Shown piece by piece: positions 15,169 through 64,000 of a stretch of DNA of 64,000 bases. The position numbers were made by a program, and so were the translations under genes. The stretch lies in sequence record OR805295.1. One strand, written 5' to 3'. Every line of letters begins with the position of its first letter. Within the stretch, counting starts at the first letter, position 1. The notes beneath the pieces are model-generated. The model saw only the letters and a list, made by a program, of their open reading frames with translations, had not been told where the DNA came from and did not search any database.

Positions 15169-15244
<76 letters not shown>

Positions 15245-17416: not shown

Positions 17417-17439
17417 ATAATATAACAATATAGTTTTAT

Positions 17440-17516: not shown

Positions 17517-17525
17517 GTTTTATAT

Positions 17526-17602: not shown

Positions 17603-17611
17603 ATTTACTAT

Positions 17612-18424: not shown

Positions 18425-18453
18425 TTGACACAAGTATAATTATTTCGTATAAT
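18425..18453 (+). promoter_or_regulatory. Consensus sigma70 promoter
   Basis: TTGACA-17-TATAAT. Confidence 0.9.
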
Positions 18454-18484
18454 AAGTGCATAAAATATCAAAAGAGAATTTTAA

Positions 18485-18844: not shown

Positions 18845-18858
18845 AATTAACTAGTTTT

Positions 18859-18948
18859 GGAGAGGTGATAGAGTCTGGTTTATTATACTAGTCTTGAAAA
18901 CTAGCGGATCGAAAGGTCCCGTGGGTTCGAATCCCACCCTCTCCGCCA
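18859..18948 (+). tRNA. tRNA-Ser(UGA)
   Basis: CTAGT-CT-TGA-AA-ACTAG, long variable arm, G73, CCA. Confidence 0.95.
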
Positions 18949-18953
18949 AATAT

Positions 18954-19043
18954 AGATACTTGACCGAGTGGCTTAAGGTGCTTCCCTGCTAAGGAAGTGA
19001 GTTTGAAAAAGCTCCGTAGGTTCGAATCCTACAGTATCTGCCA
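18954..19043 (+). tRNA. tRNA-Ser(GCU)
   Basis: CTTCC-CT-GCT-AA-GGAAG, long variable arm, CCA. Confidence 0.95.
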
Positions 19044-41908: not shown

Positions 41909-42316
41909 ATGCAACATACTCACATTCGTTTCTACAACGAAGAAACTCAACAGATCGATAACCGCCGTGGCGCTACTGTTGCCTGGGAAACCGCCGGCAA
42001 CAAGATCCGTATTTCCGTGGCAGCATGTTCGGAAATGGATAACTTCAACCGCAAGACCGGACGTGAACATGCTGCTAGCCGTCTCGAAAGCGGCGACTAC
42101 ATCGAGTTTAACGGCACCGAACTTCTCAATGCACAAATGTCTTCTGTAAGTCATGTGCAGTCTGAAGGTCTCGTTCGTGCTATGTGCTTCTTGCTAGCAC
42201 AAGGCAAAGGCGATCTGTATTACCCTGCAAGCGAAGGTCAGCTTCGCAGCGAAGCCGAGTGCAATAGCTACAACGCCCTCGAGTACCTGAAACACCAGAT
42301 GGGCATTCATCAGTAA
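41909..42316 (+). CDS. Hypothetical protein with host-like codon usage
   Basis: GATVAWE...VAACSEMDNFNRKTGR; GC-rich. Confidence 0.85.
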   Translation: MQHTHIRFYNEETQQIDNRRGATVAWETAGNKIRISVAACSEMDNFNRKTGREHAASRLESGDYIEFNGTELLNAQMSSVSHVQSEGLVRAMCFLLAQGKGDLYYPASEGQLRSEAECNSYNALEYLKHQMGIHQ

Positions 42317-42330
42317 GTATTCGGCCATTC

Positions 42331-42371
42331 GGAATTGCGATTTAGGTTTTGGAATTCTAAATCGCAATTCC
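42331..42371. repeat. Perfect 15-bp inverted repeat
   Basis: GGAATTGCGATTTAG-11-CTAAATCGCAATTCC. Confidence 0.85.
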
Positions 42372-42592
42372 GGTTTCCAAATTCAATTTTAGGCACAAAC
42401 TCGGATCCGCATTTGCATTTTGCATTTACATTTTGTGTTCTGAGTGTATATGCAAAATGCAATCGCGCATGTTGTCGATGCATTGGCTAATCTTTTATTT
42501 TTGATAGTTTAGAAAAGATTAAGAACAGAAACTATCTGTAAATTAATAAAAATAACATTTACATTACATACACATATGCATATACTATATAC

Positions 42593-42870
42593 AAGTTATG
42601 CGCTGTTGCATACGTAAATACCTCCTATGTTGTTTAGATATGTCGATTCTGGTATAACCAGATAGACCTAAGGATGATGCTAGTGATTCCTTAGTATTGT
42701 ATATTCTAGCTGAGTATAAAGAGTAAGGGGCTTTATACAAATAACAATTCCCTAGGCAAGATATACCGCTCCGTTGTGCTGACGAGCATAATTTGCCCAG
42801 ATACAGAGCACGTGACTGGTCTGAGGAGCATTTATATCAGAAAGGCAGACTTATGTTTGCCTTTCTTTTT
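42593..42870 (+). ncRNA. Candidate ~275 nt ncRNA
   Basis: TTTACA-17-TATACT (42558-42586) and terminator at 42839-42870; no convincing ORF. Confidence 0.55.
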
Positions 42871-42889
42871 GAGCAGATATTCTCTTATT

Positions 42890-42973
42890 CACTTCCTTAT
42901 TCATTTCCTTATTCATCTCTATTTCATTTGTCACTTCCTTATTCATTTCTTTATTCATCTCTATTTCATTTGT
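42890..42973. repeat. 2 x 42-bp pyrimidine-rich direct repeat
   Basis: CACTTCCTTATTCATTTC(C/T)TTATTCATCTCTATTTCATTTGT twice. Confidence 0.9.
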
Positions 42974-42980
42974 TATTGCA

Positions 42981-43092
42981 AATAAGACTAATTCTTATTT
43001 GCGTTTGTAATTTCATTTGTTATTGTAAATAAGACTAATTCGTATTTGCATTTGCAACGAAAAAGAATATGCAAATAATAACTAATCTTATT
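42981..43092. promoter_or_regulatory. Three Fur-box-like 19-mers
   Basis: AATAAGACTAATTCTTATT, AATAAGACTAATTCGTATT, AATAATAACTAATCTTATT. Confidence 0.65.
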
Positions 43093-43267
43093 TGCATTTG
43101 CACTGCCTATTATATGGATTGGTAGCATACTTGGAAATGGATAGTAAATAAGTAGTTGATTTGTTTATAAATTTTAATTCTATATCGTACTGATTGACCT
43201 TGCTATATATAGCTCGCGCGCGTATACAAGATGGTAAAAAATAATTTAAAAATATTTTAAAAAATGC

Positions 43268-43391
43268 TTGACTTTCCATTACTACGACCTTAAAGTGCGA
43301 ACTGTAGACGCAGTGTGTAGAGCGCTACATAGTAAGCAACGCAGAAAGTAAACAAAAAATGCTTGACGCAATGCAAACTAGGCTCTACACT
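43268..43391 (+). promoter_or_regulatory. Two tandem sigma70 promoters
   Basis: TTGACT-17-TAAAGT and TTGACG-17-TACACT, each with A-tract UP element. Confidence 0.85.
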
Positions 43392-43474
43392 GTATACAAG
43401 CTTAAGGGGTAGGTGCCCCGAAAGTGTAGTAAGTAAACAACATAATCCTTCCATCAGCTACAGAGGTATACAAC

Positions 43475-44179
43475 ATGTCCGTACATATCACTCGTCAACG
43501 TACCGACAAACAACACGTCCTGGCACTGGCAATCAACGGCGTGGTCATCGGCCAGACTATGGCCACTTACACCACCCCGAGCAAGCGCACCTGGTCGGCG
43601 ACCGCCGAAGTCGAACTGGCAGACGGCACAGTCGTACAGTTCGAGCAGAAAGAAGTGTTCAGCGCGATCCGCATCACCCGCGAAATCGAGCAGGCGCTCG
43701 ACGGCAAGGAACTGGCGGCCAAGTACACCCCGGAACCGAAAGTTCCCGGGCAGAAGGGTCCGAAACCGCTCACCGACGAAAGCCGGCTCAGCAACGCGAT
43801 CGCGATCGTCAAGGCGGCCATCACCCACACCGGCTTCGACGAAGCTACCCTGGTGTTCGACGGGGTCGACAAGGCCAACTTCGAGCAGAACAGCACTTCC
43901 GTCGGCAACAAGCTGCGTCGCCTGGGCTTCGTCTTCGAACTCGGCGCCGGCAAGGCGAACAGCGGCAAGGGCTTCCTGATCAACCGCAAAGCGCAGGCCG
44001 AGGCAGAAGCTGCCGAACGCAAGGCCAAGCGCGATGCCGAGAAGAAGGAACGCGAAGAAAAAGCAGCGGCTGCCAAGCGCGAAGCTGACGAACGCAAGGC
44101 CAAGCGTGAAGCCGAACGCGCCGAAAAGGTCGCTGAAAAGAACGCAGCGATCGCTGGCGCAGCGCAGGAAAGCAAGTAA
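43475..44179 (+). CDS. Early protein with Ala/Lys/Glu-rich tail; paralog of 61748
   Basis: INGVVIGQ...FSAIRI domain; GC-rich codons; AGAGG RBS. Confidence 0.9.
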   Translation: MSVHITRQRTDKQHVLALAINGVVIGQTMATYTTPSKRTWSATAEVELADGTVVQFEQKEVFSAIRITREIEQALDGKELAAKYTPEPKVPGQKGPKPLTDESRLSNAIAIVKAAITHTGFDEATLVFDGVDKANFEQNSTSVGNKLRRLGFVFELGAGKANSGKGFLINRKAQAEAEAAERKAKRDAEKKEREEKAAAAKREADERKAKREAERAEKVAEKNAAIAGAAQESK

Positions 44180-44194
44180 TTGCCCAACTGCGCC

Positions 44195-44223
44195 GAAAGG
44201 GGGAGCTATTGCTCCCCCTTTCT
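44195..44223. terminator. Intrinsic terminator
   Basis: GAAAGGGGGAGC-tatt-GCTCCCCCTTTTC. Confidence 0.85.
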
Positions 44224-45158
44224 TCATGACCACACAATCTGTATACTACTATGTCTTTAACTATATTTTCTATATCAGCTAATTTGTATACAATAATTTG
44301 GTATTCTGCGCAAGTGACACAATGCTGTTATATAGACATAATAACACGCGACACTAATATTTTTATAACCTATCCATTTTATAATAACATATTTGTATCT
44401 AAAATTAGTTCTAATACAACACTTTAAGGAAAATATGAACACTATATTAGAGATAAGTAGTGGAATAAGAAATGACTATATAACAGTCAATAATTTTACA
44501 TATGACTACTATCTAGAGGTAAACACACCTGCGTTTTCTTTAATGATAATTATTCCGACAGTTCCTATATTAGACAATACTTGCATTACTTTTATAAAAA
44601 AGTATTAATATGAATATATTCTTTATATCAAACGGTCTATCTAATATAATATATCACAAAGATAATTTGATACAACATGATATACATATGATAGATATTG
44701 AGATTAATAATTCTACTGTTATTTGGCTTACATATTCTTTCAATATTCCTAAGGTATCATTTAAATATATTATCTAATTCATTTTCTTATTGTATGAATT
44801 GCAATTGCAAATTACTCTTATTTGTAAATGCATATAAACAATCAGTTGCTATTAAAAGTATTTGCTGTTAATATATTATATAACAGTGCAATTGATATTT
44901 TAAAATACAGTGTGCAATACATCTTACATGTATTAAAATTTGTGTGTTACTTGTTTTGCATTAATGATTAATATACCTCTCATACAGTACAAAACTCATA
45001 CTATAAACAATTTGTTCGGGCGATCGTTCTCAAAATGTATACAAGTGCGAGATGACAATCTAATTTTACTTGTTAGTTTTTATATAGAAGGTTCTAAATA
45101 TAGAAAATTTGTATATAACAACCAATGCCTTGCCAATGCCTTGAAGGGATTTTAGTAT

Positions 45159-47131
45159 ATGCAAACAACAATCGTTAATGCCCTAAAATCTATTAATGTA
45201 AAGTATTCGGATATATTTTACACAAATGGTAATTTGTGTAATACCGTTACAATACGAAATATTCGCAAAAACGGTAAATTAGATTCGGCAGAACAAATTA
45301 ATGTAGAATCAGTTGTGAGCAATTATTTGATTCAAAAAGATTTAAATTTGCCCTTTTCTATTCAATGGGCAAATAATGATTGCTGTGAAGAGTATACTAC
45401 ACTTATTCTCTTCTTCAGAAAATAGTGTATGATTAGATTAAAAAGATATGTTCAATTGCATAGCATATACAGATTGTCTTACTATGCGCACAACATACAT
45501 TTTAGCAAAACAAAGAAGATAATGCTTTACGTAGGAAACGCAGGTCCCGTACCCGTAACATGACAGTATATAGCGTTAAAATGTGCATTTTTTGCACGAT
45601 TTTGCGGGGTATGCGTTACAAGCAATACACACATACTGCTTTTAAAATGCATGCTTACATGCGCTTTGTAGGGGGTTTAAAACATGCTTAAATTAGTTAC
45701 CACTGTGCTATACAACGTCTGTGTAGCTTCGTTGATAATGATTGTGTTTGTATGTGGTATAAATTTAGTAATGTATATAGATAACAATACTGACAATAAT
45801 CCAGTTGTTATCTTTATTTCCCTTCTATCGGTTATTTGGGGCGTTGCGCGGTTAAGCTATATGTTTGTTACTATCCAATTTCAGTCCAAGAAATAAAAGT
45901 ATTGGTAACATATGATAGATAAAAACGGAAATACAGAAGACTTTGATTTTGATGATGCATGCACTATAACTGACCTGCCTGTTCCTCTTCAGCAAAAAAT
46001 ACAATCATATAAATTAAATAAAATATTGGTTATGGTTGCAATCCTTAAATATTCGAATATAAAACAAGAAATTGGATGTTTCGCTATCATATGGGATCAT
46101 ATAATAAAAATAACGGTTGAAATAAAATGCAATCCGTATGCAGAAACACACATACTCATGCATGCGCATGTATCTTCTAATTCCGATTCATGCACTCATA
46201 GCGTATTGCTGAATTACAGAAACAAATATTTACCCACTAATTATTATAATTAATATGGAAGATATTCTTAAAATTGCTAAACTAATCGGGTACGTAAACA
46301 TACATGCAAATAAACATTTTCGGTATGTTTTTAACAAAGATATGGAACATGTATGTGTTAGTGCTAAGAGTAGGACAAGTATAAACGGAATAAAATACCT
46401 TTATGTAGTAATGAATATATATTATATATATTGCCAGCAAGAAAGTGTTGCCGTTATATTAAACGAAGTAAACACCGATGAAATGCCTGTATTAGATAAT
46501 CTTTATGCTAAACTTAATGATTTAGTTACACATAAATCTATTATAAAATTTAAATATACAGAAATAACACAAGAACAAATAGATTTGTTGAATAATAGTG
46601 AAAGATATATAGTATATTTTGACGACTTTATTTTAGAATACGGAATAGCTTCGTTTTATTAATTTGAGGAATATATGAAAAAACAAACAGGATTTACAGA
46701 TTGGCCATTGATTAGTTTGGGTACAATTATTATCTTGTGTGTATGGGTATTAATTCTACAATACACAGAAATAAATGTACTAGAAGAAAAATGTAACAAA
46801 GTGGGTGGTATTTTTAATAACACCGTTTGCATACGGTCAGATGCAGTTATTAATTTAGATAAGGTAAAATAAAATGCCAAAACTTTACGTTAACAAAAAA
46901 CATGATACCATTTATCTTCAATTAGATCATTTCTCATCTAATACTGTATCTCCAATTAATTATAACGAAGATGTAGAATATGTAATTGATAGGATCCGTA
47001 GTCTGCACAAATCCGGCTTCGGATTTAGTCATATGAATACTCTACAAGAATATCTTACGGCAAGAACAGAGCAGGATAAGAAGTTTAAGCTTAAAGTAGA
47101 AGACTTCGAAGTAGTATCATTTAAGATTTAA
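45159..47131 (+). other. Run of small hypothetical genes (45159, 45684, 45912, 46255, 46675, 46874)
   Basis: Closely packed co-directional ORFs; two with hydrophobic helices. Confidence 0.65.
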
Positions 47132-47152
47132 AATTATACATAATCAAAGTAT

Positions 47153-47181
47153 TTGACATTTGATGTGTATAATAGTATAAT
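47153..47181 (+). promoter_or_regulatory. Consensus sigma70 promoter driving an ORF-less region
   Basis: TTGACA-17-TATAAT. Confidence 0.92.
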
Positions 47182-47187
47182 TTGTTC

Positions 47188-47900
47188 ATGCTGTCGTAAC
47201 AGCTACTTTGTTCCATTCACAAGCAGCTCTGTTCCATTATTGGATATTGGTAGTAGAAACTATCCCCATCGTGCCCACAGTATTGTTCTGTTAGAGACAG
47301 ATTAAAACATACAAAAGTGGGTTATTTAAATTATGATTTTGGGTGCTGAAGTATAGTCGTTAGACAAGGATATGTCTAATGTTGCAAAGGACTATGCGAA
47401 ACGTATTATATATCTTATCCGATATTAGATATGTAATAAAAGGATGAAGCTCTGGTAGAAACAGAGTGTAATTCTTGCTTGTATTTCACACGGATATACA
47501 AAAGAATATACACACCAACTTCAGCATTGATGTAAATTTTCTAGCATAGGTATATAACATCGATGTTCCGGGATTCATTGGAAACAATGAGAGAATGATG
47601 TAATCTGAGGAAAAAGGTCCCCGCCTCGTCCATATTACGAAATGGTTTTGAGTACTTATGCCCTCGTCCTATATTGGCATATGGGTTTTATATTTCTCCC
47701 GTAATTACGGGAGAATATAATTTCCTGAACCTACTTGGAAATGGACGCTTCTGCTGTGCGAAGCACAGCATCTAAGGGCCTTCACCCTTACCGCTAAGAG
47801 CAAGAGCAAAAGCAATATAATTACAAATAAGAATTAATTATTGTTTAGTTTTATCGTAATGAATATGAAGATAAAAACTAAACAATAATTCACATGTAGC
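47188..47900 (+). ncRNA. Candidate ~700 nt structured ncRNA
   Basis: No ORF >=60 aa on either strand; many stems including 47344-52/47518-26. Confidence 0.65.
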
Positions 47901-48047
47901 GTTAGCTACTGTGAATATCTACTATAGTATTAACCATATATGTATACAAGGGCATAATATGACTATTACTTGTTGACAATATGATATGTGTGTTACACTG
48001 CATAAATCAAATGTACATTACAATGTTTTGATTATTAGGAACATACT

Positions 48048-48632
48048 ATGTCATTTTCTTTGACTGCTGCTATTAATCGATACACTAGTCTAATAGAAGA
48101 AAATTTCAAAATAAATTATCTGAGGCAGTTTGAGTCAGGATATATCTCGTATAAATTACTAAGAAATAAAGCACTCCTGCATACCGAAATATCACATGGA
48201 CTTGATTACATAAAGGTAATTATTTCTTATACATATGTAGAAAATAATGTCGAATTAGATATCAAATCATCTATTGTACATTCGTATATTTCTACTACTG
48301 ATTGCTCTAAATTTAAAGTAGGAGATATAAAAACGTTTTACGATTCAGTTCCTCGTGGAAATGTTTTTAATATTAAAGAGAATACTCAAGTTAGCTGGGC
48401 AACAGCTAATATTGGAATTCACGAGAATCCGTTTAATCTTAATTATATTTCGAACAATAAGTATATTCGATTAGAAACAGGAGATATATTTGTTTGTATT
48501 AATGATAGTATGGTAAATGAACTACAAGAACATATGCATGTTCATTCTATATGTACTAACAAAACAAAGAAGTTTTATGTAAGAGAAATTGATTTAAATA
48601 TGCTACATTACAAAAAACACATTATGGAATAA
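48048..48632 (+). CDS. Hypothetical protein
   Basis: 194 aa, AGGA RBS. Confidence 0.75.
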   Translation: MSFSLTAAINRYTSLIEENFKINYLRQFESGYISYKLLRNKALLHTEISHGLDYIKVIISYTYVENNVELDIKSSIVHSYISTTDCSKFKVGDIKTFYDSVPRGNVFNIKENTQVSWATANIGIHENPFNLNYISNNKYIRLETGDIFVCINDSMVNELQEHMHVHSICTNKTKKFYVREIDLNMLHYKKHIME

Positions 48633-48635
48633 AGA

Positions 48636-49184
48636 ATGAACTACAAAGCATTAGAAGTATTTTATTTCTTTCTAGAACATTACAAGGTAAATCCAGTCGC
48701 CGACTTGGAATTTAAATTCGAACCCTCAGGTAGTGATGATCAATCTAAGCGCAAGTCATCACTGTCGTTTGTTAAACGTATTGGTGTTCTTACTCCCTCA
48801 TTCAACGAATTATACGAAGTTCAGAATCGATTCATGTCAGATCTTCGAGAAATGAATGTAGTATATAAGATAGGATTTAATTATAATGCATTCAACGTAT
48901 TAGCACCTTTGTATGCAAGATATGAAAAGAATGTAAAAGAATTTCGTCGACTTTTAAAGAAATACTCAAATTTCAACGAAGTAACAGAATATTACAAAAA
49001 AGCCAACAACATGTTACCGGACAATGTATACGAAACAATGAAGGAAGATTTTTCATTGTTTAACGACGTTACTACAAAGAGGTTATCTGAAATAAAACTT
49101 TGTTATCCTAATTGGCAAGTATGGGATTCTGAACATCCCAACTGGGAAACAATAAATCAACTTTATAAGAATGCAAAGAAATAA
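48636..49184 (+). CDS. Hypothetical protein
   Basis: 182 aa, followed by terminator near 49195. Confidence 0.8.
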   Translation: MNYKALEVFYFFLEHYKVNPVADLEFKFEPSGSDDQSKRKSSLSFVKRIGVLTPSFNELYEVQNRFMSDLREMNVVYKIGFNYNAFNVLAPLYARYEKNVKEFRRLLKKYSNFNEVTEYYKKANNMLPDNVYETMKEDFSLFNDVTTKRLSEIKLCYPNWQVWDSEHPNWETINQLYKNAKK

Positions 49185-49342
49185 TGCATATTTAGAAAGG
49201 GAATTATAATTCCCTTTCTTTTTGGATCTATATTAGCAAATGCTAATTAATCTTATTTGCACAAATTTAATCCTATTGTGTTTTCTATTTTGAAGTGCTA
49301 CATTACATGTAGTTGCATAAAACTATACACAGGAGAAATGAT

Positions 49343-49891
49343 ATGTGGGATATCAAAGATGGGGATGATATCGAAGTCGAAGCAGTTATGGATGAACGAA
49401 GCTATGAGTGGACCGGCAAGTTACGTATCATCCAATATCGGACCCTTCAATCGGCTCAGTGGCGTGTTATTATCAATATAGTAGAATTTTGGAGTCATTC
49501 TACTGAAAGTATACTGAAAGAACTTGGTATAGAAGCTAAACACATTACTAAAGGATATGCCACACTTAGTATGGTTCGTTTCCCGGATGTTGATTACCTG
49601 TTTAGTGTAACACCCGATAATGCAGATTATGTAACTGTTAACCACAGTGCAGTAGATATTTCTGACAGTTGGTTTGTTGCAAAAAACATAAAAGCAGTTA
49701 TGTATCATTTGGGATCTGAAATCCAGATCACTCCGTGGTTTGTGCGTAAAGATAGTAGCGAGACAAATTTCAATTGTATTGATCGATTAGTAGCTCTAGT
49801 AAAAGAGAATACTGATGTTGACACGTATCAGTACATCAAGGTAGGTTGTCCTGAGGACAAGTCATTTTACTTTGCGTGGATAGACAAATAA
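49343..49891 (+). CDS. Hypothetical protein
   Basis: ATG 7 nt after AGGAG. Confidence 0.75.
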   Translation: MWDIKDGDDIEVEAVMDERSYEWTGKLRIIQYRTLQSAQWRVIINIVEFWSHSTESILKELGIEAKHITKGYATLSMVRFPDVDYLFSVTPDNADYVTVNHSAVDISDSWFVAKNIKAVMYHLGSEIQITPWFVRKDSSETNFNCIDRLVALVKENTDVDTYQYIKVGCPEDKSFYFAWIDK

Positions 49892-49980
49892 TTCGTTTGC
49901 TATACGTACTAATACGTTGTATACTGTTAGTACGCATAGTAGAAGTAACACATAACGTTTTGATTTAATGGAGCCTTAAC

Positions 49981-52287
49981 ATGAGAGAAGAGTTTGAAGC
50001 CGCGATCTTCGCGGAAGTGAATAAACAGCGCGCCGCCGAAGGTGAATTTGTCCTTCAGCATCCAGAGGGGCTATTTGCCCGCGATGACGATGGTTCCTAC
50101 TTGATCCGCTGGGTCAAGAGCGCATGGTGGGCCTGGAAAGCCAGTCGTGTGGCACTGACGCCCCGGACGCCCGATGTGTGCAGCGAGTGCAATGACACCG
50201 GGAAAGTCTATGACGAAAGCGGCGCCGGTCCGTGGAGTTGCTACGCCTGTACCGATAACCCGGAGGTGATCGGCTACGCAAACGGCGATGAGTTGGACAA
50301 CATGCTGGATGACCGCACTGCTGTTCTCTCTCCAAGGAAGACCAGTTTTCACACCGTGCCAGTGTATCGACTGATCCACACCCAAAACAAAAGTTTTCAA
50401 TAAAATCGATATGGAACTGGTCCTTCAAGAAGCCGAAATTGAGGTAGTGAAATGAGCAGACTGACCGCTGAACAAGCCCGTGACATAGCGCGAGCGAAAG
50501 ACGATGTCGATGCCATCCTCAACGACATCGCCAAGGCAGCCGCAGAAGGAAAGTACGTGTACACTACCCGCGCCTATGGGTTCGGTACAGGCGGCGGACG
50601 GCGCAGCGACGCGATCCTCAAAGTGTTGCGTAGCCTCGGCTACGACTGTGCGGTGCATGCTGAGGGACGCCAGTCTGTTGACCTGTGGCTTGAAGTGAAA
50701 TGGGGAGACAAGCCATGACTAACAACCCCGGAGATTCAAAAATGATCGTAGAAAACGCCAAGCAAGCCGCCGAAGACTTCAAAACTTCCATGGCTAAGAT
50801 TTTTCCGAATTACATCGCCAGGGCGTCGGTTTCCGATAACCTTGGTCCGGCGATGACAATTTCGTTTGCGAATGTCGGTTGCGCTTCCGAAGCCCCTAAC
50901 AGCATTCTGATAAATGCGAGCGGTTACATGCGCTTTATGATGCATTTGTGTGACAATTGCGGGAATGTATTGCCAGAAGGTTCGCCGGTAGAAATTGAGC
51001 TGCTAATGTGGTCTATCCCCTATCGTTCGGAAGTAATCAAGTTCCGCAAGATCAAGGGCAAGACACCAGCCGAAGCTATGCAAAAGCTAGTCAAGTGGTT
51101 TGAAAAAACGCCGAAGCTATCCGGGGTCTGTAATGGTCTCCACGTAGGACACGCAGAATGAACATTGTGTTGGACAAATTGCTGTTTGGCGGTTTCATCG
51201 ACCAGCACCGCAATGAACTTGCCCAGCAACAACTGAATCGGTTGTTTGCCAAGTACGGTGAGCCGAAGATTGGTATCACACGGGCATGCTTTCTATCTAA
51301 GCATTACGTCCTGAAGTTCCCGATTAATGACAGGGGTGAGCGGTGCAACGATTGGGAAGGTAGCTGTTCCGGCAGCTATTTGGCACGCGGACGCTGGCTA
51401 GAAATCGGAGGCTTCATTTGCGTCATGCAAGAGCGTTTGGTTGAAGTGGATTGGAAGAACAACACCCATGCAAACTTTCCTGATTGGGTAGGCAGCATAG
51501 ATTGTGGTCAAGTCGGCTACGATAAACATGGCGTTCTGAAAGCGTATGACTTCGGGTGAAGCATGACCATCAATTTGTTTGTTGTCAACATAAAGAACGA
51601 ACCTATCCCAACCGACCACAAGTCGATACTCCGCTATCTTGGCCTTAGCCTGCACACGCAAGGCCGTCGTGTATCTGCCAAATTCAGCAGCGGTAAGTTG
51701 AAGCTGAACAACTACAACATCGAATTTTTTCACATGGCGGAGATGATTCCATGACCGACACCAACAAAATAAAAAAGCTAGCAAAACTGGACGAGATCGA
51801 CAGGCTCAGGGCAGAGCGAGACGCCGCCCTGGCCAGGGTCGTAGAGCTGGAACGCGGCAAGGTCTACGTCGAAGCCCGGCAATGCGACGAGTGCCAGCAT
51901 AGCGGGATCAACGATTCCGCCACGGGCGTGGCTGCCTGCCACGAATGCGACTGGACCGGACCAGAGCCAGAAGAGGATAAGTGCCCCGGTTGCCAGAGGG
52001 AGAATTGCATGGCCGCAGCCTGCCCGCAGTGTGGTGCCCGATATGTCCTTGTTGCCAGCGAAGAGATAGCCGCCCCTGTAGCCCAGGCTCAGCACAGCGT
52101 ACCAGAGGAATGGCGCGACATGCTGGCCGAGCTGCAATGGCATTACGAGCCGTATGACGATCACCACCACACGCCCCAGGGCTTTTACTGCCCGCGTTGT
52201 GGGAGAGAACAGGACGAAGGACACAAGCCGGGATGCAAGATAGCCGAGTTGCTCGCCACTGTCGACCTCAAAGAAGACAAGAAATAA
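49981..52287 (+). other. GC-rich gene island (49981, 50452, 50715, 51158, 51563, 51751)
   Basis: Abrupt rise in GC; overlapping co-directional ORFs; 51751 has several CxxC motifs. Confidence 0.85.
51158..51559 (+). CDS. Minimal protein-kinase-like protein
   Basis: GITR...YVLKFP...NDWE...SIDCGQVG...YDFG. Confidence 0.45.
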   Translation: MNIVLDKLLFGGFIDQHRNELAQQQLNRLFAKYGEPKIGITRACFLSKHYVLKFPINDRGERCNDWEGSCSGSYLARGRWLEIGGFICVMQERLVEVDWKNNTHANFPDWVGSIDCGQVGYDKHGVLKAYDFG

Positions 52288-52328
52288 AATTCTAAATTAC
52301 TCGAACAAACATAATAGGAGCAGCATAC

Positions 52329-52559
52329 ATGAGCCTCAAATATAACGGATATGTCTTTAACATTAGTATCCTTGGCCAAAACGAAGCTATCAGTGAATAC
52401 GCCTATCCTACCGATGATCCTGAAAGTGATAAAAAGAAAGCTTTTTTGGCTGCAATGACAAAATTCGTCGAATCGGATGATTTCGAGAAATTTACTAATC
52501 AAATGTATAACAATTTCTCGATTAATGTTCAAGCACTAGTTTCTACGGCTACGGAGTAA
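52329..52559 (+). CDS. Hypothetical protein
   Basis: AGGAG RBS, 76 aa. Confidence 0.75.
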   Translation: MSLKYNGYVFNISILGQNEAISEYAYPTDDPESDKKKAFLAAMTKFVESDDFEKFTNQMYNNFSINVQALVSTATE

Positions 52560-52761
52560 ATTTTCAATTATTATACTATTTCAGTTACTTGTATCAGCAA
52601 CAAGACTGCAGAAAATAAAGAATAATTAATTCCAGTTATTTGTTCCTGTTTTAAGTGACAATAAAGAAGGTATGACTACTTTGTCTTTGATGCTAAGTAG
52701 TAATTATCCTTACGATAACTACACACATATCAACTAGCTATTATGATAGAGGCAAAAATAA

Positions 52762-52938
52762 ATGAATATCTTAAAACATATATATTGGGCTGTGCGTTAT
52801 GGTGATTGGAATATAGGTTGGGATCCAACCTGGGGTAGCAAACCCAATGAACCTTTTATTTGGTGTAAACCGATATATTATGACGGACATCATTGCTACT
52901 TGCGAGTAGGCTACTTTTGGATAGGAGTAACATACTAA
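52762..52938 (+). CDS. Small Trp-rich protein not in the ORF track
   Basis: 58 aa MNILKHIYWAVRYGDW...YYDGHHCYLRVGYFWIGVTY. Confidence 0.65.
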   Translation: MNILKHIYWAVRYGDWNIGWDPTWGSKPNEPFIWCKPIYYDGHHCYLRVGYFWIGVTY

Positions 52939-53179
52939 CATTTACAATATATCTATAAAAGAATATATTAGTAACACAATTGTTAAATTGCAAACACTAA
53001 TTAATCTTATTTGCATTTGCTATCTTGTATAATAGAAACGACTTCTAAACATGGATATGAGATGGAAAACTTAGATAGGATCTCTGTTACAAATTTTTGA
53101 GTTAAAATACATAGTAGTTTTGCTATTATGTGTTTATAGAAGTTTAATAACAGAACTAAAACATAAAGGATTGTCTGTT

Positions 53180-54831
53180 ATGAAAAGTTACGCAAAGTTT
53201 TATGTAGGAACAAACATTTATGATGCCGAAGTGCCGGATTTAGACATAAACATGCCAGATGCAGAACTTTTCGAAGTAGCATTGCATCAAATGGCAGTAC
53301 AGTGGTCTAGCACCGCCGGGCATCCGCATCACAAGGATGCAATGCGTAAAGACGGCAAGGTAGCCCGGAGTAAAGAACGGGTGTATATTCGCGGCAACGG
53401 TTGGTCCGTTTCGTTACATAGTCCCGAATTTGTAGAAAAACACTCGGCATACCTTGCCGCAGCGGAGTGGAAACTACTAACAGATTTGCTTGTATTTGAC
53501 ACCTGCTGGAACGCTAATTAGTAATTCTCTCTACACAGGAGAACGGCAATGAATACTATCAGTGTAAGAAATATGCGTTATATTGTACGTGGTTTTGTTA
53601 CTCATGCAATTGCCCGGGGTTATTCAGTTTCCGTTTATGAAGGGGGTGATTGGGCGATCGAGAAGAGTACTTCTGTAAAAGATATTATGAATTCTATCAT
53701 GTCTACTGACAGTGATACATTCTGTATTTATAATGCAGAGAAAGTGAAGGTAGGTCATGTATATTGCATTTATTGCAATAGTGATTACGAAGTTATTGCA
53801 GATTACACCGATTCACCTCTTATGCAATCGATTCTCGTCGAAGCTCTACGCAGAGCAAATCGAATAGAAGAACTGAGCTGAGAAAAAGAAGCAGGAATTA
53901 TTCCTGCTTCTTTTGTATGTTACAAGTTAAACAAGATTAATTTGCATTTGCTATGTAATAATATTTTCTATTGAATTAAATATTACATGTGTTACTATAT
54001 GCACAATGCTGTTAAACAAAGCGATAAATTAATAGCTATGGCAAATAAATTACATATCATCTGTGCAAAATGTGGTAGCACTCTTATAAACATAAAAATA
54101 CCAAAAGTATGTGCAGATGATCCATTAAATGTAGTATATTTTTCGTGCGAAAACTGTAAGGAACTTACAGGCATATACGAATGGACAGAAACAAATAATC
54201 GCAAAGTAGTTGACGATAGGTAAGAAGTAAATGGAAGCATATACAGATTATCCTATCCTAATGATCGGCGATGTTCCGCATGAAGAAGCACCTATAAGAA
54301 AAATAATTATAAAAGGTTATGATTTTAAATATATCTGGGCAGTATACCATTATATGGATTTAATTCCTATAAGGGTTCAGATAAAACGCTGTTATGTGTA
54401 CGAAACTCCGGGTAGAGTAGGTTATGTAAAATCTATTAGAGAAGAAGTATTAAGAAAACGCAAAAAGAAACAACGTGACATATATGAATACGATACATAT
54501 CAAGATGAAGACGATTTTTGGAAAGGAATGTATTAAAATGCATAATACTCGTATTGTTGTTCGACTCAATGTTATCACTCCTATTTCAACTGCTAACGGC
54601 GTTGTAGTTGATTCAGTAGTCCGCGGGCATCGAGCAGGCATTAAGCAAGGCAAACAAATGTATCATGTTTATTCTATTCAAACAGGCGAGTATCTCGGTT
54701 TGAAATCAGAAGACGACGTAAGTGAAATTAAACCGTCTTCGTATGAAGAATTTCTTACTCCGAGAACACTTACTTCAAACGAAGTAGAACAAGTTAAATC
54801 TTCTTTCGAATGGTACGAAGCTAACATTTGA
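53180..54831 (+). other. Early-type small genes (53180, 53549, 53987 CxxC ribbon, 54231, 54538)
   Basis: RBS-bearing ORFs separated by hairpin terminators near 53884 and 54835. Confidence 0.75.
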
Positions 54832-55799: not shown

Positions 55800-56065
55800 A
55801 CAAAGCAATACAGCATAACGCATTGTAAGCAACACTAAACGGGAGACACCGTCCCGCAAGCAGCCCGCCCGCGATGTTCGCGGGCTGCGGCAAACAGGTG
55901 TACAAGGTCTAGTAACGTGGAAGGCGCAGCATACCTTTCCTTAAATCGGAAATCGGTCAATGACGTACCTGCCCCTGGACACTGCTAGACCTTGCTGCTA
56001 CAGGCGGGACAGCTACAAAGGTACACTGTATGTATCTATGCTTTACCCCGCTTTGTAGCAGGTCT
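55800..56065 (+). ncRNA. Candidate ~260 nt GC-rich structured ncRNA
   Basis: TTTACA-17-TATTAT promoter; stems 55860-88, 55903-12/55985-94, 55996-56008/56047-60. Confidence 0.6.
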
Positions 56066-56341
56066 TAAAACGGTCTACTGGCATATGCCTTAGTGCTAGT
56101 AGGAATCATTAACCTAAAACTATTATATGCTTCCTGGAGGTGAAGAGTATGCCGCCGCAGCATTAAATATACATTATGATGATGATAATTATGAATGCCG
56201 AAACACCGCTTCGATTCGTTTAAAAGACAGATGTCTGAATCGAATGTTTTTGGGCAAAAAGGTCCCTTAAATGGGATTTTTTTGCGGCTGCTAACTAGCA
56301 AACGCGAATTAATCTTATTTGCAATTTAAGAAAAATACCAG

Positions 56342-58299: not shown

Positions 58300-60387
58300 A
58301 TGAAATACAAAATCATTCTTCAAAACCGTAGCAATGGTGTTGTCGCTGAATTTTCGGTAGATAACGAAATCAATCCCGAGATCATGGATACTTCTATTAT
58401 CGTTCATGAAGGGACGTCGTATATGTATACCGGCTCGGGTGGTTCTTACTACGATACCATTTATTTTAGTGAAATATATAAGACCACTAACACGACAGAC
58501 TTGTCGTTGCTATAACAGAAAACGCTTTACAATAGCTCTAAATGTGCTATTATGTAGTTGTACATAAAACAACGCAGGAGATTATATCATGCGTAGCACA
58601 CTCGGAGTAGAACATGCATCGAGAGAAATTCTTTCTGCATGGGTCGATGTAATGCAGCAACTCAACTGTGAGCATTTCTATAGCGAACTGAAAGACAATG
58701 CAGTTCGCTTAGATTTACAGGAATATATGTATACTGAACGTCTCGTTCAGTATTATACAGATCTTCCAGTCACTAATGCTGGTTGATGCCTTCGCCGGGC
58801 GTGAACTACATTTATTAGGAAAGGGGTTTTAAGCCCCTTTCCTTTTGAATGTTAAGTGTAAGTGCAAATTAATCTTATTTACTTGTTACAATTTAGTTCT
58901 TGAATTCACACATAATAGTATGTATAGTTTTAATATATAAGATACCAACATGCGAGGTTGTAAAAATGAAACTTCATAATATGAATGGTAATATTTTTAT
59001 TCGGTTTGAAGTAGATACTTCGTCGGATAATTTTGTAGAAAAAGTTTACGAAGAAATTATGCAGCTTCCTGCAAAATTGTATTTCGAGAAGATAGAACGT
59101 AGAACTTGGTTCTGTAGCTTTTACACAGGCTACGACGAATTGGTGGAATTCGTCAATGAAATAAAAGACAGAGTTAGTTCAGAAGGTGTTTTCTTTGACA
59201 GGCCATTGCAGCTAACTCTTATCAATTCGGGCGGGGTAGAAGTAAATATTTCCGATATAGAACCGGATCTTCACTATCTCTTTGATAACGATATTACAAC
59301 TACAAAACTTATCTCTATGGAAGGATCCTGCAATATGGTAGATTTGCTCATGTGCGAATGGGTACCTATTAGCATTCGAACTTCTATTGCTAAGGCATTT
59401 ACTGACAAATTTTTATAATAAAATACCTGTTGACGCATATAGCAATATGCGCAATAATATGCACGAAAGCAAGAACAGATCCAAATAACCTTTTTATAAG
59501 AGATTATATTATGTCTAAGTATCTTTCTTTTAGCGTAAACGTAGACATGGACAACACCGGTCTGTTGAAATGGTTGCGTCCTACCACCGGTCGGCTGGAT
59601 GGATTCGAAGAGAGTGTTAAAAATTTCGTTTCTTCTTTCCGCTCAATCGAGTCGAGCCCTACGGTGTTTCAAGTTTACGATGATGATAACCAGCCGTTGC
59701 AAGTAAGCAACATGAGCTGCTTCTTCCGATACTTTCCGGTGTACGGTATGTGCCTTGCACCGGGTTCGATGGTCAGGGAACAATATCGTCGGGAGATCCT
59801 CGACTATACTACTGACGAGTTCTGTTCATTCAGTAACTACTTCAGTGACGGCAAGGCCATCCGCGGCGGGGCAGTCTTGTGGTGGGATGTAGAGAAAGAC
59901 TTGGTATGGTCTGTTAGTCCCGAATTGATTCGCCTCGTATATGCCCGCTTGCAAAGTGATATGGACATCGGGTGGTATCATCTCGGGCAAGAAGTTATGG
60001 CTGTAGTTCCCCTTCGTTCTTATCCCAACGATGTTGCCCGATGGAAATATGTACAAGGTAATATCTGCGGCATCGACGATCAAGTGAGCATTCGCAGCAA
60101 TGTCGACGGTCGAGTCACCCGGCTTAATTGGGAATACATCGTTACCCAAGGGGGATAATATGGGCGGTCTTGCTAATATAGTTGCATGCATAGCTTCTAT
60201 TGTTGCAATTGTTACTGGAAATATCTGGTATTTTATCGCACTGTTGCTATGCACAGCATTTATGTCGCCCGAACGAAAAGGATCATTAATTGATGTATTT
60301 TCGGTCATTGTCGGGATTGGTGCTATATTTAACGGAGACATTGTATGGGGCATAGTGTTCATAGCATTAGTGATAATAGTTAAATAG
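58300..60387 (+). other. Early-type cassettes (58300, 58589, 58966, 59511, 60160)
   Basis: Promoters near 58526 and 59430 (TTGACG-17-AATAAT); terminators near 58818 and 60388. Confidence 0.7.
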
Positions 60388-60580: not shown

Positions 60581-61169
60581 AATACAATAATCGTATCTAA
60601 ATAGCTACCTACCTTTATATCAAAAACCATTCTATGAAATATATTTCCCAAATCATATTACAAAAGTTATATTTGAATTTTGGATTCTTATCTCAACCTT
60701 GCATTGCAATATAAAATGCGAATATGAGTGTGCTGTATGTGTTTGCATACGCATGTACATACGCATAAACGTATTAAGAAATACAATTTATTTTATCCTA
60801 TACGATTATCTTTAATACCTATATGTTGTTTGATAATAAAAGTATAATAAGTAAAAGACATTATCCATTGTATAATGGTTTTAATATATTTCGCTGTAGT
60901 GTCGGATGTATATATTTTTCATATGATAAAATGTCATTTATTCACGACATATTCATGCAAACCATTTCGTTGTTCCTTACGACGTTATTATTGTTTTTAC
61001 TTATAACTCCTTTATATTATATAGGATTGAAAAATCCAGTCAATATAACTACATTTGTTTCGTGTTTAATAATAACTATTCTTATAACAAGTTATTATTT
61101 TATGTCAGTTTTGACTTATATATTCTGTATTACCGTTCAGTCAATAATTTATAAAAGAAAGAAATAATT

Positions 61170-61280
61170 TAGTTTCTTTTTCATTATCAATATCTTTTTC
61201 TTTTTCAATATCTTTTTCTTTATCTTTTTCTTTTTCAATATCTTTTTCTTTATCTTTTTCTTTATCTTTATCTTTTATCA
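61170..61280. repeat. Pyrimidine-rich low-complexity repeat
   Basis: TCTTTTTCTTT and CAATATCTTTTTC units; minus strand reads KDKEKDIEKE. Confidence 0.85.
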
Positions 61281-61291
61281 TTGCAAATACA

Positions 61292-61396
61292 AATAATAAT
61301 TATTCTTATTTGCATTTAGTGATGTAAATAATTCTTATTTGTAATTGCGATTAATTCTTATTTGCTACAATAGATAGAATAAGAATAATTCACATT
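61292..61396. promoter_or_regulatory. Four tandem Fur-box-like 19-mers
   Basis: AATAATAATTATTCTTATT, GATGTAAATAATTCTTATT, ATTGCGATTAATTCTTATT, AATAAGAATAATTCACATT. Confidence 0.7.
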
Positions 61397-61686
61397 TGCA
61401 ATGCCGCTAAAAGCGCTGTAAGCGCTGTATGTTGCGTAGTAGTGCTAAGCAATGCGTTAGTACAGCTACGCGCACAAACGCTGTTATGCGCGCTTGTAGC
61501 GCGTTTTAGGGCCCATGCGCATGCGTATACCTGTAGCTTTACATAGTAAAATGCAGAAAAGACGTCGTCTATTAACGTGCCTGTCTTAATAGAAATATAC
61601 AATTGTACAATACCTGCGAAATCCTACACACTACAGACATGCAAACAAGCAATGTGCTTGCAAGCATAAAAGTTTTTAAAAAGTAG

Positions 61687-61715
61687 TAGACACAGTGTAG
61701 CATCCCTAGTAAGCT
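61687..61715 (+). promoter_or_regulatory. sigma70 promoter
   Basis: TAGACA-17-TAAGCT. Confidence 0.7.
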
Positions 61716-61747
61716 ACACACATAAACAACACAACGGAGTACAAGCT

Positions 61748-62215
61748 ATGTCTAATGTAAGCATCCCTGCAGTAACGGTAGAGAACATCGGCACCCTGCG
61801 CATCGTGCGCACCGCTAACAAGGAGGTCGGAAGTGTGCTCGACCTAAAAGTTAACGGGGTAGTAGTAGGGCAAGCTTTCCCGCTCTACAGCACAAAAACC
61901 CAGCGTAGCTGGAACGCGAGCATGCACGCTACCGTTAACGGTGTAGAGGTGCAGTTTGCACAGGAAGGCGTGTTCAGTGCAATCCGCATTGCACGGGCGT
62001 TCGAGGATGCAGTAAAGTATGCCGTTAGCAACGGCGAACAAGGGCAACCCCTCCCCGCGCCGGCGGCGCAGACCGATGCCCCGGCAACGGCAGAAGCGCA
62101 AGCAGAAGCCCCGGCGGCGCAGACCGAGGATGCGCCGGAGACCCCGGCGGCCGAAGCTAAGCCCGCCCGCAAAGGCGGCAGCAAAGGCAGCAGCAAAGGC
62201 GGCAGCAAAAAGTAA
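61748..62215 (+). CDS. Early protein with Ala/Pro/Lys-rich tail; paralog of 43475
   Basis: VNGVVVGQ...FSAIRI domain. Confidence 0.9.
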   Translation: MSNVSIPAVTVENIGTLRIVRTANKEVGSVLDLKVNGVVVGQAFPLYSTKTQRSWNASMHATVNGVEVQFAQEGVFSAIRIARAFEDAVKYAVSNGEQGQPLPAPAAQTDAPATAEAQAEAPAAQTEDAPETPAAEAKPARKGGSKGSSKGGSKK

Positions 62216-62228
62216 GCGCTGCTAACAC

Positions 62229-62254
62229 AGGAAAGGGGCAACTGCCCCTTTCCT
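62229..62254. terminator. Intrinsic terminator
   Basis: AGGAAAGGGGC-aact-GCCCCTTTCCT; exact reverse complement at 62947-62972. Confidence 0.85.
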
Positions 62255-62383
62255 TTTATGTCCTAGTTGTAAATGCAAATTAATCTTATTTGCATTTGCA
62301 CAAGTCAATCTCCTGTTGCATTACTGCGGCAAGATGTTAGTATGTGCTTGGCAGTAACACATAACTAGCAGGAGCAACAGACA

Positions 62384-63480
62384 ATGGCTAAAGTATTGCA
62401 TGTTAACAGCATCGGCAACATCGCCGAAGTGTTTACATCTGTAGACCTCGATAGCGCCTTGTTGCACGCAATCAAGCGCTGTGCAATGATGGGCAAGGTT
62501 AATGTTGTTGGTCCCAACGCTCCTGTGTTTGCTAGCCACTACGACGCACTGACAGCGTACGACGTGCAGTGGCGCCTTGTTCCACCAGGCTGCGGCGTTA
62601 CTTTGTACGTCATCGCCGAGGACAACAACTAAGGAGAGACACAATGAATCTCGTACATCTGTGGATCAACGGGCGTGTTGTGACTGCCCGCAAGGTTGTA
62701 AGTAAACACACTGTCCGCAATCCGAACAGTCCGATTGATATCGAGACTATCGACGTTGTTCGACTGCGTCTGCCCCGTGGTGTTCGTGCTAGCAGTTGGG
62801 CACTCCGTAAGGCAGTGTACCAGCTCATGGAGCAAAGCTGTAGCTGCTCGAGTGACTGTTGTGGACACTGGTTCGGCGGCGCACGCAAGATCTACATTAA
62901 AGGCAGAGACGTCAGTGTCGTTGCCGGGTACCAGCGCAATTACTAAAGGAAAGGGGCAGTTGCCCCCTTTCCTTTTATCCATTAATGTGCAAACGCGAAT
63001 TATTCTTATTTGCACAGGACAGTGAGATGCAAACAAGAGGCATTCTTGATGCAGTCGGGTGATAAGAATTGTTCACAAAAAGAAAAAGCTTGCGTTATGC
63101 TACACAGGTGCTAGTATGTGTATTGCAGTACCTATAAACATTAATAGCAGGATAAGAAAATGGTTGACTTTAAAGGTTTTAACTGGGACGCACTAGTCCC
63201 GGAGGACAACGTTTCCACAGTTTCCATTAAAAATCACTACGAGGAACTCCTACAAAGTTTTGTTGACAACGGCATAGACTATGTGTTAGTCCGGCTGTCC
63301 CAGGAACTGCCGCACTACGAGGATTCAGATTATCCCTGCTACAAATTGGTTGACAAGTATGCAGGATGGATAGTAGGCTGGGACTACTACGGATTTGTTG
63401 TGGAACGCATGGACACGCACCTTTTCTTTGACAACAGCACTGCAAAAGGTGTAATGGACTTCCTGGAAGCTAACGGCTAG
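62384..63480 (+). other. Early-type genes 62384-62632, 62644-62946, 63160-63480
   Basis: AGGAG/AGGA RBS, promoters TTGCAT-16-TAGTAT and TTGCGT-16-TAGTAT, terminators. Confidence 0.8.
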
Positions 63481-63710
63481 CACAAAAAGGAAGGGGCGCA
63501 AGCCCTTTTCTTTTGTCTGCAATTTCTGTGCAAATAAGAACTATTACAGTTGTGGTAAAAGCACAATGCAAATAAGACGCATTCTTGATTAGGCCTGATA
63601 ATAAGTTCTTATTAACAACAAAGAAACTGAATAAGAATAATTCTGAAAAAATAACCCTGCGGCGTAACACAAAGGGCTTGCAAATTGCAAGCCCTTTTTA
63701 ATATGCATTT

Positions 63711-63778
63711 GTTCTAAGATTAGTTCTTATTTGCAATGATAATATTCCCGCCTTACAAATAAGAACTAATCTTAGAAC
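63711..63778. repeat. Perfect 23-bp inverted repeat of Fur-box-like elements
   Basis: GTTCTAAGATTAGTTCTTATTTG-22-CAAATAAGAACTAATCTTAGAAC. Confidence 0.9.
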
Positions 63779-64000
63779 AAATATTCACTTGATTTTTCTC
63801 CCAATATAGTGTATGTCTATATTAGATAAGATTAAGTCTTGTTTGCTTGTTACACTTTATATGTTGCAATGCTAAGGCAATGACAATATTATATGTACAG
63901 CAACACAAAACAGGAGATATAACATGTCAGCAGAATTGAAGCGGTTGTTAGAGATTTTTCCAACCTTTAAATCATTCATTTATGCTGAAGGGGCATATGG

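Follow-up and report, generated by a model that had tools for sequence, protein, structure and literature searches.

Copy A, at positions 47153-47916 of a 64,000-nucleotide stretch of the Pseudomonas phage Paride genome (OR805295.1; hereafter the window), is very probably a functional gene for a structured non-coding RNA (ncRNA) and belongs to a three-copy family of the genus Wroclawvirus. In blastn comparisons, the region 47100-48050 is a 100% match to Paride, and ten further records of PA5oct-like jumbo phages (Wroclawvirus, Arenbergviridae) match it at 98.2-98.8% identity; window positions equal Paride positions minus 124,000. Local BLAST of Paride pieces establishes, at the level of sequence, three collinear paralogous copies per genome in all 11 records, every copy being conserved at 98.6% or more, with only copy A located within the window. 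Copies B (Paride 234.2-235.4 kilobases (kb); L026 46198-47430) and C (Paride 117.3-118.1 kb; L029 17315-18100) also lie on the + strand, each within a gap poor in open reading frames (ORFs), and each is at least 98.9% conserved across 11 of 11 records. The counterpart of copy A in PA5oct resides at ~12,831-13,608, within the 39-kb terminal repeat, so that packaged DNA holds copy A twice.

Three copies behind sigma-70-type promoters

The sequence-only reading of this DNA, which was made before any database search, described ~700 nucleotides (nt) of ORF-less, highly structured RNA behind a perfect consensus promoter. The promoter is indeed present, as TTGACA-17 nt-TATAAT on the + strand (47153-47181), matching the sigma-70 consensus at 12 of 12 positions. 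Just one other such match occurs in the 64-kb window, 32 nt before an ORF; the copy A promoter is separated by 867 nt from the next ORF of 40 codons or more. Neither hexamer varies in the 15 of 15 relatives that cover the site, where variation is confined to the spacer and flanks, and transcription is predicted from the promoter to start near 47188. Copy B is preceded by the same 12/12 arrangement (TTGACA-17-TATAAT, L026 46210-46238, + strand) and copy C by a sigma-70-type TTGACA-17-TAAACT (L029 17327-17355, + strand), such that a shared core sits 35-155 nt downstream of its own promoter, and on the same strand, in all three copies. The G+C content within copy A (0.40-0.47) exceeds that of its flanks (0.23-0.32), the pattern anticipated when an AT-rich genome encodes a structured RNA.

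Copy C coincides with ncRNA004 of PA5oct (EST35_0353, MK797984 246116-246734), a 619-nt 'putative lncRNA' (long non-coding RNA) defined by RNA sequencing (RNA-seq) and accounting for 0.08, 0.03 and 0.02% of phage reads in early, middle and late infection, respectively (Lood et al. 2020, PMC7318152). The annotated start of ncRNA004 lies ~10 nt past the predicted start site of copy C, and its annotated end lies 22 nt past a GC-rich hairpin. By analogy with this paralogue, copy A is presumably also made as a discrete RNA. The relationship to ncRNA004 is one of true paralogy: the 127-nt core, the layout from promoter to hairpins and the collinear blocks are the same, whereas the remaining sequence, apart from a few short blocks, cannot be aligned between the two. 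The published record of ncRNA004 consists of coordinates and read percentages only: no mention of its structure, its family relationship or copies A and B was found in Lood et al. 2020 (PMC7318152), and a literature search returned no description of the family beyond the ncRNA004 coordinates. The family is thus undescribed, although GenBank already lists one of its copies, uncharacterised, as a 'putative lncRNA'.

No protein is common to the flanks of copies A, B and C (blastp, E <= 1e-3), and the genes downstream of the three are unrelated, which argues that the copies are free-standing units and makes a dedicated partner gene, or a leader specific to one regulon, less likely. Indeed, no conserved partner gene was found beside each copy of the kind that accompanies the omega RNAs of TnpB/IscB, retron msr-msd or bridge RNAs.

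A conserved core with covarying helices

The conserved core (47223-47349, + strand, 127 nt) is predicted to fold as a four-way junction. It is closed by helix P1 (47224-27/47345-48) and contains the hairpins H1 (47233-36/47241-44) and H2 (47249-54/47259-64, loop AGAA) as well as helix P0, in which 47265-72 pair with 47333-36 and 47340-43. P0 carries a variable arm built from H3 (47273-78/47317-22), H4 (47280-83/47309-12) and H5 (47287-92/47296-301). Blocks of 49 nt and 26 nt are identical in A, B and C, and a diverged segment separates them.

To this core we fitted a covariance model (R1) built from the variants of copy A and from copy B alone, with copy C excluded. R1 scores copy A at 169.5 bits, copy B at 150.9 bits and the excluded copy C at 120.2 bits, where the match places standard pairs at 39 of 39 paired positions; the next best score in the 287-kb genome is 18.5 bits, and the search with R1 in that genome found no further copies. 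Across 11 distinct sequences, 97.7% of pair cells hold standard pairs, compared with 33-49% when the partners are slid by 1-3 columns. Changes on both sides are observed in 10 of the 39 pairs, distributed over P1, H3, H4 and H5, and the core covariation score of 0.252 is reached by none of 500 shuffles (0.112 in shuffles). Covariation, which the sequence-only reading had proposed as a check, is therefore present. Within copy A itself, phage 30-3 replaces the C-G pair 47276/47319 with U-A.

The strand on which this structure operates can be read from the G-U pairs. Four G-U pairs of the core are invariant; on the opposite strand, or if the DNA formed a cruciform, they would turn into C-A mismatches, and so would the single-side changes that keep pairing only as G-U. 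Such ortholog substitutions account for 8 of 8 in the local helices of copy C, 2 of 2 in copy B, and those at 47301 and 47307 in copy A. Both observations assign the structure to the + strand RNA, the strand driven by the promoters, and the substitution patterns thus show that the core secondary structure is conserved on the + strand RNA.

The repetition of the core also bears on short-read assemblies: Logan contigs (k = 31) of the unrelated runs SRR31012036, SRR24309835 and ERR4777625 begin or end exactly at the 30-mer 47246-47275. A short query at this spot matches two or three places in every genome, and a physical DNA end or processing site at 47246-47275 was set aside because the exact three-copy repeat of 36-49 nt outruns the assembler k-mer. 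The contig breaks are most likely caused by these exact core repeats.

Purifying selection in a locus lacking conserved coding potential

The absence of ORFs noted from the sequence holds in that no ORF between 47132 and 48047 exceeds 50 codons, and the longest, at 50 codons, begins at the TTG of the -35 box. Three to four mini-ORFs of 30-55 codons are annotated at copy A in 5 of 11 records (Paride, where they are named Paride_0321-0324, Deifobo, Ettore, Cassandra and PAC2), while another 5 of 11, including the RNA-seq-curated PA5oct record, leave copy A unannotated; the calls disagree among genomes that are ~99% identical. ORFs annotated across the core use different frames in A and B and vary in length between paralogues, and from the AUG within the core the frame stays open for 7 codons in A, 50 in B and 14 in C. 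Over the core, no reading frame corresponding to the small genes Paride_0321-0324 is conserved between paralogues. Taken together, the comparison shows that copy A lacks conserved coding potential.

In the PA5oct record, copy B is covered by two small hypothetical coding sequences (CDSs), EST35_0144 and EST35_0145 (L031 800-952 and 1098-1217). The first begins at the AUG in the conserved core and has no counterpart of similar length in A or C; both are probably mis-annotations. The annotation can be corrected accordingly, with the three to four mini-ORFs at copy A in 5 of 11 records regarded as spurious, and the small CDSs over copy B in PA5oct as probably so.

Diversity was compared between copy A and ten flanking genes in nine related genomes. 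Nucleotide diversity is 0.0083 in 47188-47930, compared with 0.040 at third and 0.018 at first and second codon positions of the flanking genes. In 47188-47930, 17 of 743 sites segregate; the flanking genes have 117 segregating sites among 1029 third codon positions (Fisher P = 3e-14) and 107 among 2054 first and second positions (P = 6e-4), such that copy A is 4-5 times less polymorphic than the third codon positions. The adjacent non-coding stretch 47931-48047 has a diversity of 0.043, which is the neutral level. Copy A is thus more constrained than the neighbouring proteins and the constraint ends near 47930, close to the boundary assigned in the sequence-only reading; these figures show that the locus is under purifying selection.

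Predicted fold of copy A

The minimum free energy of 47188-47930 is lower than that of dinucleotide shuffles on both strands (z = -6.5 for the + and -8.0 for the - strand), so the description of copy A as highly structured is borne out. At the scale of 200-nt windows, 47301-47600 shows structure on the + strand alone (z -2.9 and -3.6, versus -0.8 and -1.1 on the - strand), whereas 47601-48000 is structured on both strands, with the flanking genes near zero. The individual elements that had been read from the letters are all found at their places, as set out below.

The transcript would begin with a copy-specific 5' leader (47188-47222, + strand), which bears a small hairpin (47190-47203) and a 17-nt partial duplicate of the core start (47201-17); the leader is ~155 nt long in B and ~46 nt in C and also differs in sequence. 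As noted from the sequence, GTTCCATT occurs twice, at 47209 and 47230. A conserved core hairpin uses the second occurrence as its 5' strand; the first lies in the local 17-nt partial duplication, which is unique to copy A. The other repeated motif, CCTCGTCC, occurs at 47624 and 47662, and this pair is likewise unique to copy A. The suggestion that the repeats serve as seeds or protein-binding loops is consequently unsupported, because the repetition of both is found in copy A alone.

Directly after the core, a two-tier hairpin (47351-47397, + strand, z = -4.5) consists of an outer stem (47351-58/47390-97) and an inner stem (47359-66/47373-80), separated by a 9-nt internal loop on the 3' side and capped by the six-base loop AGGAUA. 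It is followed by a second conserved block (47439-47467, + strand), in which AAAGGAUG precedes a 6-base pair (bp) hairpin (47449-54/47462-67, loop GUAGAAA); the block is collinear in A, B and C, with its hairpin predicted in A and C and shifted in register in B. In the predicted fold, the block-2 hairpin is enclosed in a middle domain (47344-47526, + strand), which is closed by the 9-bp long-range stem 47344-52/47518-26 around the TTAGACA/AGGATA/TGTCTAA hairpin (47360-79), as originally described, and which also holds hairpins 47404-38 and 47471-507. The 3' strand of the 9-bp stem overlaps block ACACCAAC (47512-19), which is common to A and C. The stem also overlaps the 3' strand of P1, and the two are therefore mutually exclusive in copy A.

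Further downstream (47524-47590, + strand), a hairpin (47524-33/47557-66) is predicted to be followed by block GUUCCGGGA (47565-73) and by the previously noted GAAA-tetraloop hairpin TCATTG-GAAA-CAATGA (47575-90). GTTCCGGGA is common to A and B, and related UUCCGG...UGAAAG blocks are present at the collinear place in B and C. The 3' domain (47616-47747, + strand) comprises the C-rich block CCCGCCUC (47620-27), common to A and C, the CCTCGTCC repeats, and a terminator-like, GC-rich palindromic hairpin (47688-47720, z = -5.2), which includes the 22-bp palindrome 47694-47715 seen earlier and is followed by UAUAAUUU.

Two hairpins (47752-70 and 47773-90; + strand) occupy 47752-47790. The first is the TGCTGTGC-GAA-GCACAGCA hairpin of the sequence-only reading, a triloop hairpin whose stem pair 47754/47768 is C-G in most genomes, A-T in Deifobo and a mismatch in five sequences. 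The unit ends in twin 3' hairpins (47836-47916, + strand, z = -7.0), where a long AT-rich hairpin with perfect 17-bp arms (47836-52/47874-90), at the place of a stem that had been put at ~20 bp, abuts a short one with a 4-nt loop (47888-47916).

The triloop at 47760-47762 occurs in both orientations (GAA/AAA and TTC/TTT) among isolates that are ~99% identical, as does the triloop of the analogous 12-bp hairpin of copy B (L026 47281-47283; TCT and AGA). These flips look like repeated DNA-level inversion of the loop at short palindromes. Hairpin 47752-70, with the CUAAG that follows it, was also considered as a mimic of a CRISPR (clustered regularly interspaced short palindromic repeats) repeat, and this was dropped without a formal test as the loop inverts freely between isolates and the likeness to the type I-F repeat extends to only a few bases.

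Shared architecture in copies B and C

Outside the core, similarity between the three copies is limited to short collinear blocks, namely AAAGGAUG with its hairpin, ACACCAAC, UUCCGG...GAAA and CCCGCCUC. In a three-way alignment past the core, MAFFT misaligns the diverged helices, and the post-core domains were therefore compared by position and architecture only. On this basis, the two-tier hairpin of copy C (L029 17533-17579) shares the architecture of that in copy A, with stems of 8-9 bp and 8 bp and an internal loop on the 3' side in both, whereas the stem sequences are unrelated and the loop is AAGGAC. The corresponding hairpin of copy B is shorter and carries AGGA in its loop. Copy C also has a 9-bp helix (L029 17593-601/17718-26) that ends in the ACACCAAC block and closes an equivalent three-hairpin domain.

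A GC-rich hairpin is located at the equivalent place in both B and C, as are twin 3' hairpins with perfect AT-rich stems of 16-17 bp, whose long-stem sequences differ; within this twin-hairpin part, B and C have an identical 32-nt loop region. The same order of modules, from the AGGA-loop hairpin through the AAAGGAUG block and the GC-rich hairpin to the twin 3' hairpins, is thus found collinearly in A, B and C.

Immediately downstream of copy C, ~750 nt of ORF-less DNA (L029 18100-18860, Paride 118.1-118.86 kb) consist of ~85-90% A+T. Two 27-nt direct repeats 64 nt apart (18199-18225 and 18263-18289) lie within this stretch, which resembles an origin or iteron region.

Distribution and relation to known families

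The view that copy A belongs to no known family holds for Rfam 15: a search with A, B and C gave no match at the gathering score, nor at E = 10, and this covers the GOLLD, ROOL and OLE comparison that had been proposed. The best sub-threshold match is RT-14, with 24.7 bits against a threshold of 48.1, and no family is common to the three copies. A blastn search of 50,697 phage records matched only the 11 Wroclawvirus records, with none added by a more sensitive blastn. Exact 16-21-mers of the core returned nothing or chance matches in IMG/VR, JGI metagenomes and GTDB genomes, where R1 scores none. In the data at hand, the family therefore appears confined to one genus, Wroclawvirus.

The neighbours of copy A belong to no informative Pfam or PHROG family. 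The flanking gp049 and gp050 have no relatives in IMG/VR, and the relatives of gp050 among 5.8 billion proteins are found only at 84% identity or more. Synteny as a route to distant homologues accordingly gave none, the flanking proteins being orphans.

Proposed function and alternatives

The identification of copy A as a large structured phage ncRNA, as the sequence-only reading had ventured, draws on the paralogues, the compensatory changes, the G-U pairs of the + strand, purifying selection and the recovery of copy C by RNA-seq. Several points weigh against it. The covariation derives from three deep lineages only, on a model-fitted alignment, and P0, H1 and H2 never vary and hence are predicted only. 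In copy C, the 3' tail of the RNA offers the 3' strand of P0 an alternative partner over 15 bp, where one substitution is G-U compatible, and in copy A the 9-bp long-range stem competes with P1; these models make alternative conformations of the A and C RNAs possible. The RNA-seq-curated PA5oct record is empty at copy A and has small CDSs at copy B, although its authors sought ORF-less transcribed regions, and ncRNA004 itself is rare (0.02-0.08% of phage reads; PMC7318152). Moreover, both strands fold well in 47600-48000 and two triloops invert, so that part of the 3' region may act as DNA.

PA5oct is reported to rely on the host RNA polymerase (PMC7318152). We propose that the host sigma-70 RNA polymerase would initiate at ~47188 early in infection, and that the + strand transcript would fold into the four-way-junction core (47223-47349) followed by several hairpin domains; its length would be ~540 nt if it stops at the GC-rich hairpin 47688-47720 and ~730 nt if it runs to the end of the twin hairpins at 47916. 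The ~85 invariant nucleotides of the core would then fold compactly into a specific binding site for a ligand or for a macromolecule of host or phage, with the body, variable in sequence and conserved in structure, serving as a scaffold. The RNA could thereby act in trans during host take-over, as a component of a ribonucleoprotein or as a decoy, and the three copies might provide dosage or differently timed expression.

The reading that we favour, tentatively, is a trans-acting RNA with a core that binds a specific partner: ~85 invariant junction nucleotides next to an arm in which only pairing is kept are the pattern of ribozymes, riboswitch aptamers and specific protein-binding RNAs, and this pattern combines with early host-polymerase promoters and a discrete copy C RNA. 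Conserved at ~99% across isolates of three continents and, if so read, expressed early, the RNA would be a plausible factor in host take-over.

It is also conceivable, if rather speculative, that the core represents a new functional RNA class, be it a ribozyme, a ligand or protein sensor, or a self-assembling architecture such as GOLLD or ROOL. GOLLD, ROOL and OLE resemble this family in being ORF-less, ~0.55-1.2 kb in size and rich in conserved helices, and GOLLD and ROOL are phage-borne, whereas the present family differs in having no Rfam 15 match, in its restriction to one phage genus and in its three copies per genome. Were this so, a jumbo phage would deploy three copies of a new RNA class, four with the terminal repeat, to take over Pseudomonas aeruginosa. 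Large structured RNAs whose function is unknown are rare in bacteria and phages, and every new class so far has brought new biology or architecture to light. The family offers an information-rich core, built-in paralogues that supply covariation, a tractable host in PAO1 with PA5oct or Paride, and RNA-seq of infection that already exists as GSE130190 (PA5oct in PAO1 at 5, 15 and 25 min); phage therapy counts PA5oct-like phages among its candidates, and Paride stands out by killing dormant cells.

Less likely is a cis-acting leader, in which the core would act on the transcribing polymerase or on a downstream platform, in the manner of a processive antiterminator or a riboswitch-like sensor, and would set how far transcription reads through the many downstream hairpins into the + strand genes that follow (gp050 onward in copy A). 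The position of the core 35-155 nt past a strong early promoter in all three copies, the several terminator-like hairpins downstream of it, the + strand genes downstream of each copy and the dependence of the phage on host polymerase would all suit such a leader, as would the switch-like alternative pairings of P1 with the 9-bp stem in A and of P0 with the 3' tail in C. However, 500-1000 nt of further conserved structure separate the core from the next gene, to which copy C adds 750 nt of AT-rich DNA; ncRNA004 is seen as a discrete 619-nt RNA that is not continuous with the downstream genes, and these genes are unrelated among A, B and C. The antiterminator put RNAs of phage HK022 (putL and putR) are likewise paralogous structured RNAs past early promoters, in a phage that uses host polymerase, and show covariation between copies. 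They are, however, two-hairpin RNAs of ~70 nt with genes directly after them, rather than a 127-nt junction within an ORF-less unit of 0.5-1.2 kb, and have no sequence or Rfam similarity to this family.

We regard as improbable that the transcript primes or activates replication through an R-loop, with the AT-rich 3' hairpins unwinding or loading a primosome and the three copies marking three origins. All copies do combine an ORF-less transcript from a strong promoter with AT-rich DNA that bears a perfect 16-17-bp hairpin, and the ~750 nt of ~85-90% A+T DNA after copy C hold two 27-nt direct repeats; these iteron-like repeats are present at copy C only. Copies B and C are situated at divergent gene junctions and at local minima of the cumulative GC skew, whereas the genes around copy A all point the same way and the skew does not change there, and GC skew here merely tracks gene orientation. 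The triloop inversions point to hairpin extrusion during replication, and the phage has a T4-like replisome and an RNase H-like protein. Nevertheless, the strongest constraint falls on the 5' RNA fold and not on the 3' segment that would form the hybrid, and no G-rich RNA stretch is evident. ColE1 RNA II and T4 oriF/oriG offer the parallel of an ORF-less structured transcript of ~550 nt that runs from a strong promoter into AT-rich or hairpin DNA, in T4 at several sites; copy A differs from them in being off any strand-bias switch, and no evidence of an R-loop segment or of initiation is seen here.

The sponge envisaged in the sequence-only reading is unsupported. As a decoy for RsmA/RsmN (CsrA family), comparable to RsmY, RsmZ and CsrB, the RNA would titrate the protein with GGA motifs in its loops, which we consider very doubtful. 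AGGA is found in the loop of the first post-core hairpin in all three copies, the second block AAAGGAUG is close to the CsrA consensus from systematic evolution of ligands by exponential enrichment, and multi-copy paralogous sponges are typical of the CsrA/Rsm system. Yet GGA is not significantly enriched, at 14-18 per kb and 10-14 per copy against 7.6-11.3 expected (dinucleotide shuffles, P = 0.14-0.19), and most GGA triplets are predicted to be paired; the number of sites in known sponges is several-fold higher, and the invariant core would be left unexplained.

That there is no RNA gene at all, only intergenic DNA with four tiny protein genes (Paride_0321-0324) or a decaying pseudogene or mobile-element remnant, is extremely improbable: the 30-55-codon ORFs called in Paride, Deifobo, Ettore, Cassandra and PAC2 vary between near-identical genomes and are missing from 5 of 11 records, the + strand ORF begins within the -35 box, the ORFs over the core differ in frame and length, real genes are more diverse even at first and second codon positions, which is the reverse of what decay would give, and the compensatory and G-U-preserving changes indicate selection on RNA pairing. 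The probability that remains is spread over functions other than those weighed here.

Other features of the window

Two further ORF-less transcribed loci of the terminal-repeat early region, PA5oct ncRNA001 and ncRNA002, correspond to window positions 42613-42848 and 55812-56266. They were rejected as members of the family, as R1 finds no match in L023 or L024 and the core is absent. Both are putative lncRNAs and are reported as abundant, at 1.2-5.1% of phage reads (PMC7318152). ncRNA002 is 92% identical between PA5oct and Paride, and a strongly structured stretch (42301-42500, z -5.9/-8.4) is located just upstream of ncRNA001.

The gene downstream of copy A (48048-48632; PA5oct gp050, an orphan of 194 amino acids) has a nucleotide diversity of 0.052 at codon positions 1 and 2 and 0.055 at position 3, compared with 0.001-0.035 and 0.00-0.049, respectively, in its neighbours, which suggests relaxed or diversifying selection on the gp050 sequence. 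One 45-codon ORF (45429-45563) also has a higher diversity at positions 1 and 2 than at position 3.

Strong structure on both strands is also observed in intergenic stretches at 63601-63900, 44101-44300, 53801-54000, 58701-58900 and 62201-62400 (z down to -8.8), which are probably terminators or palindromes between transcription units. Islands with a G+C content of 0.44-0.53, at 42000-44000, 49000-53000 and 61000-64000 in a genome of ~0.31 G+C, may represent recently acquired genes. Lastly, 12 transfer RNA genes are clustered at 14833-19040, and PA5oct is reported to have 12 as well.

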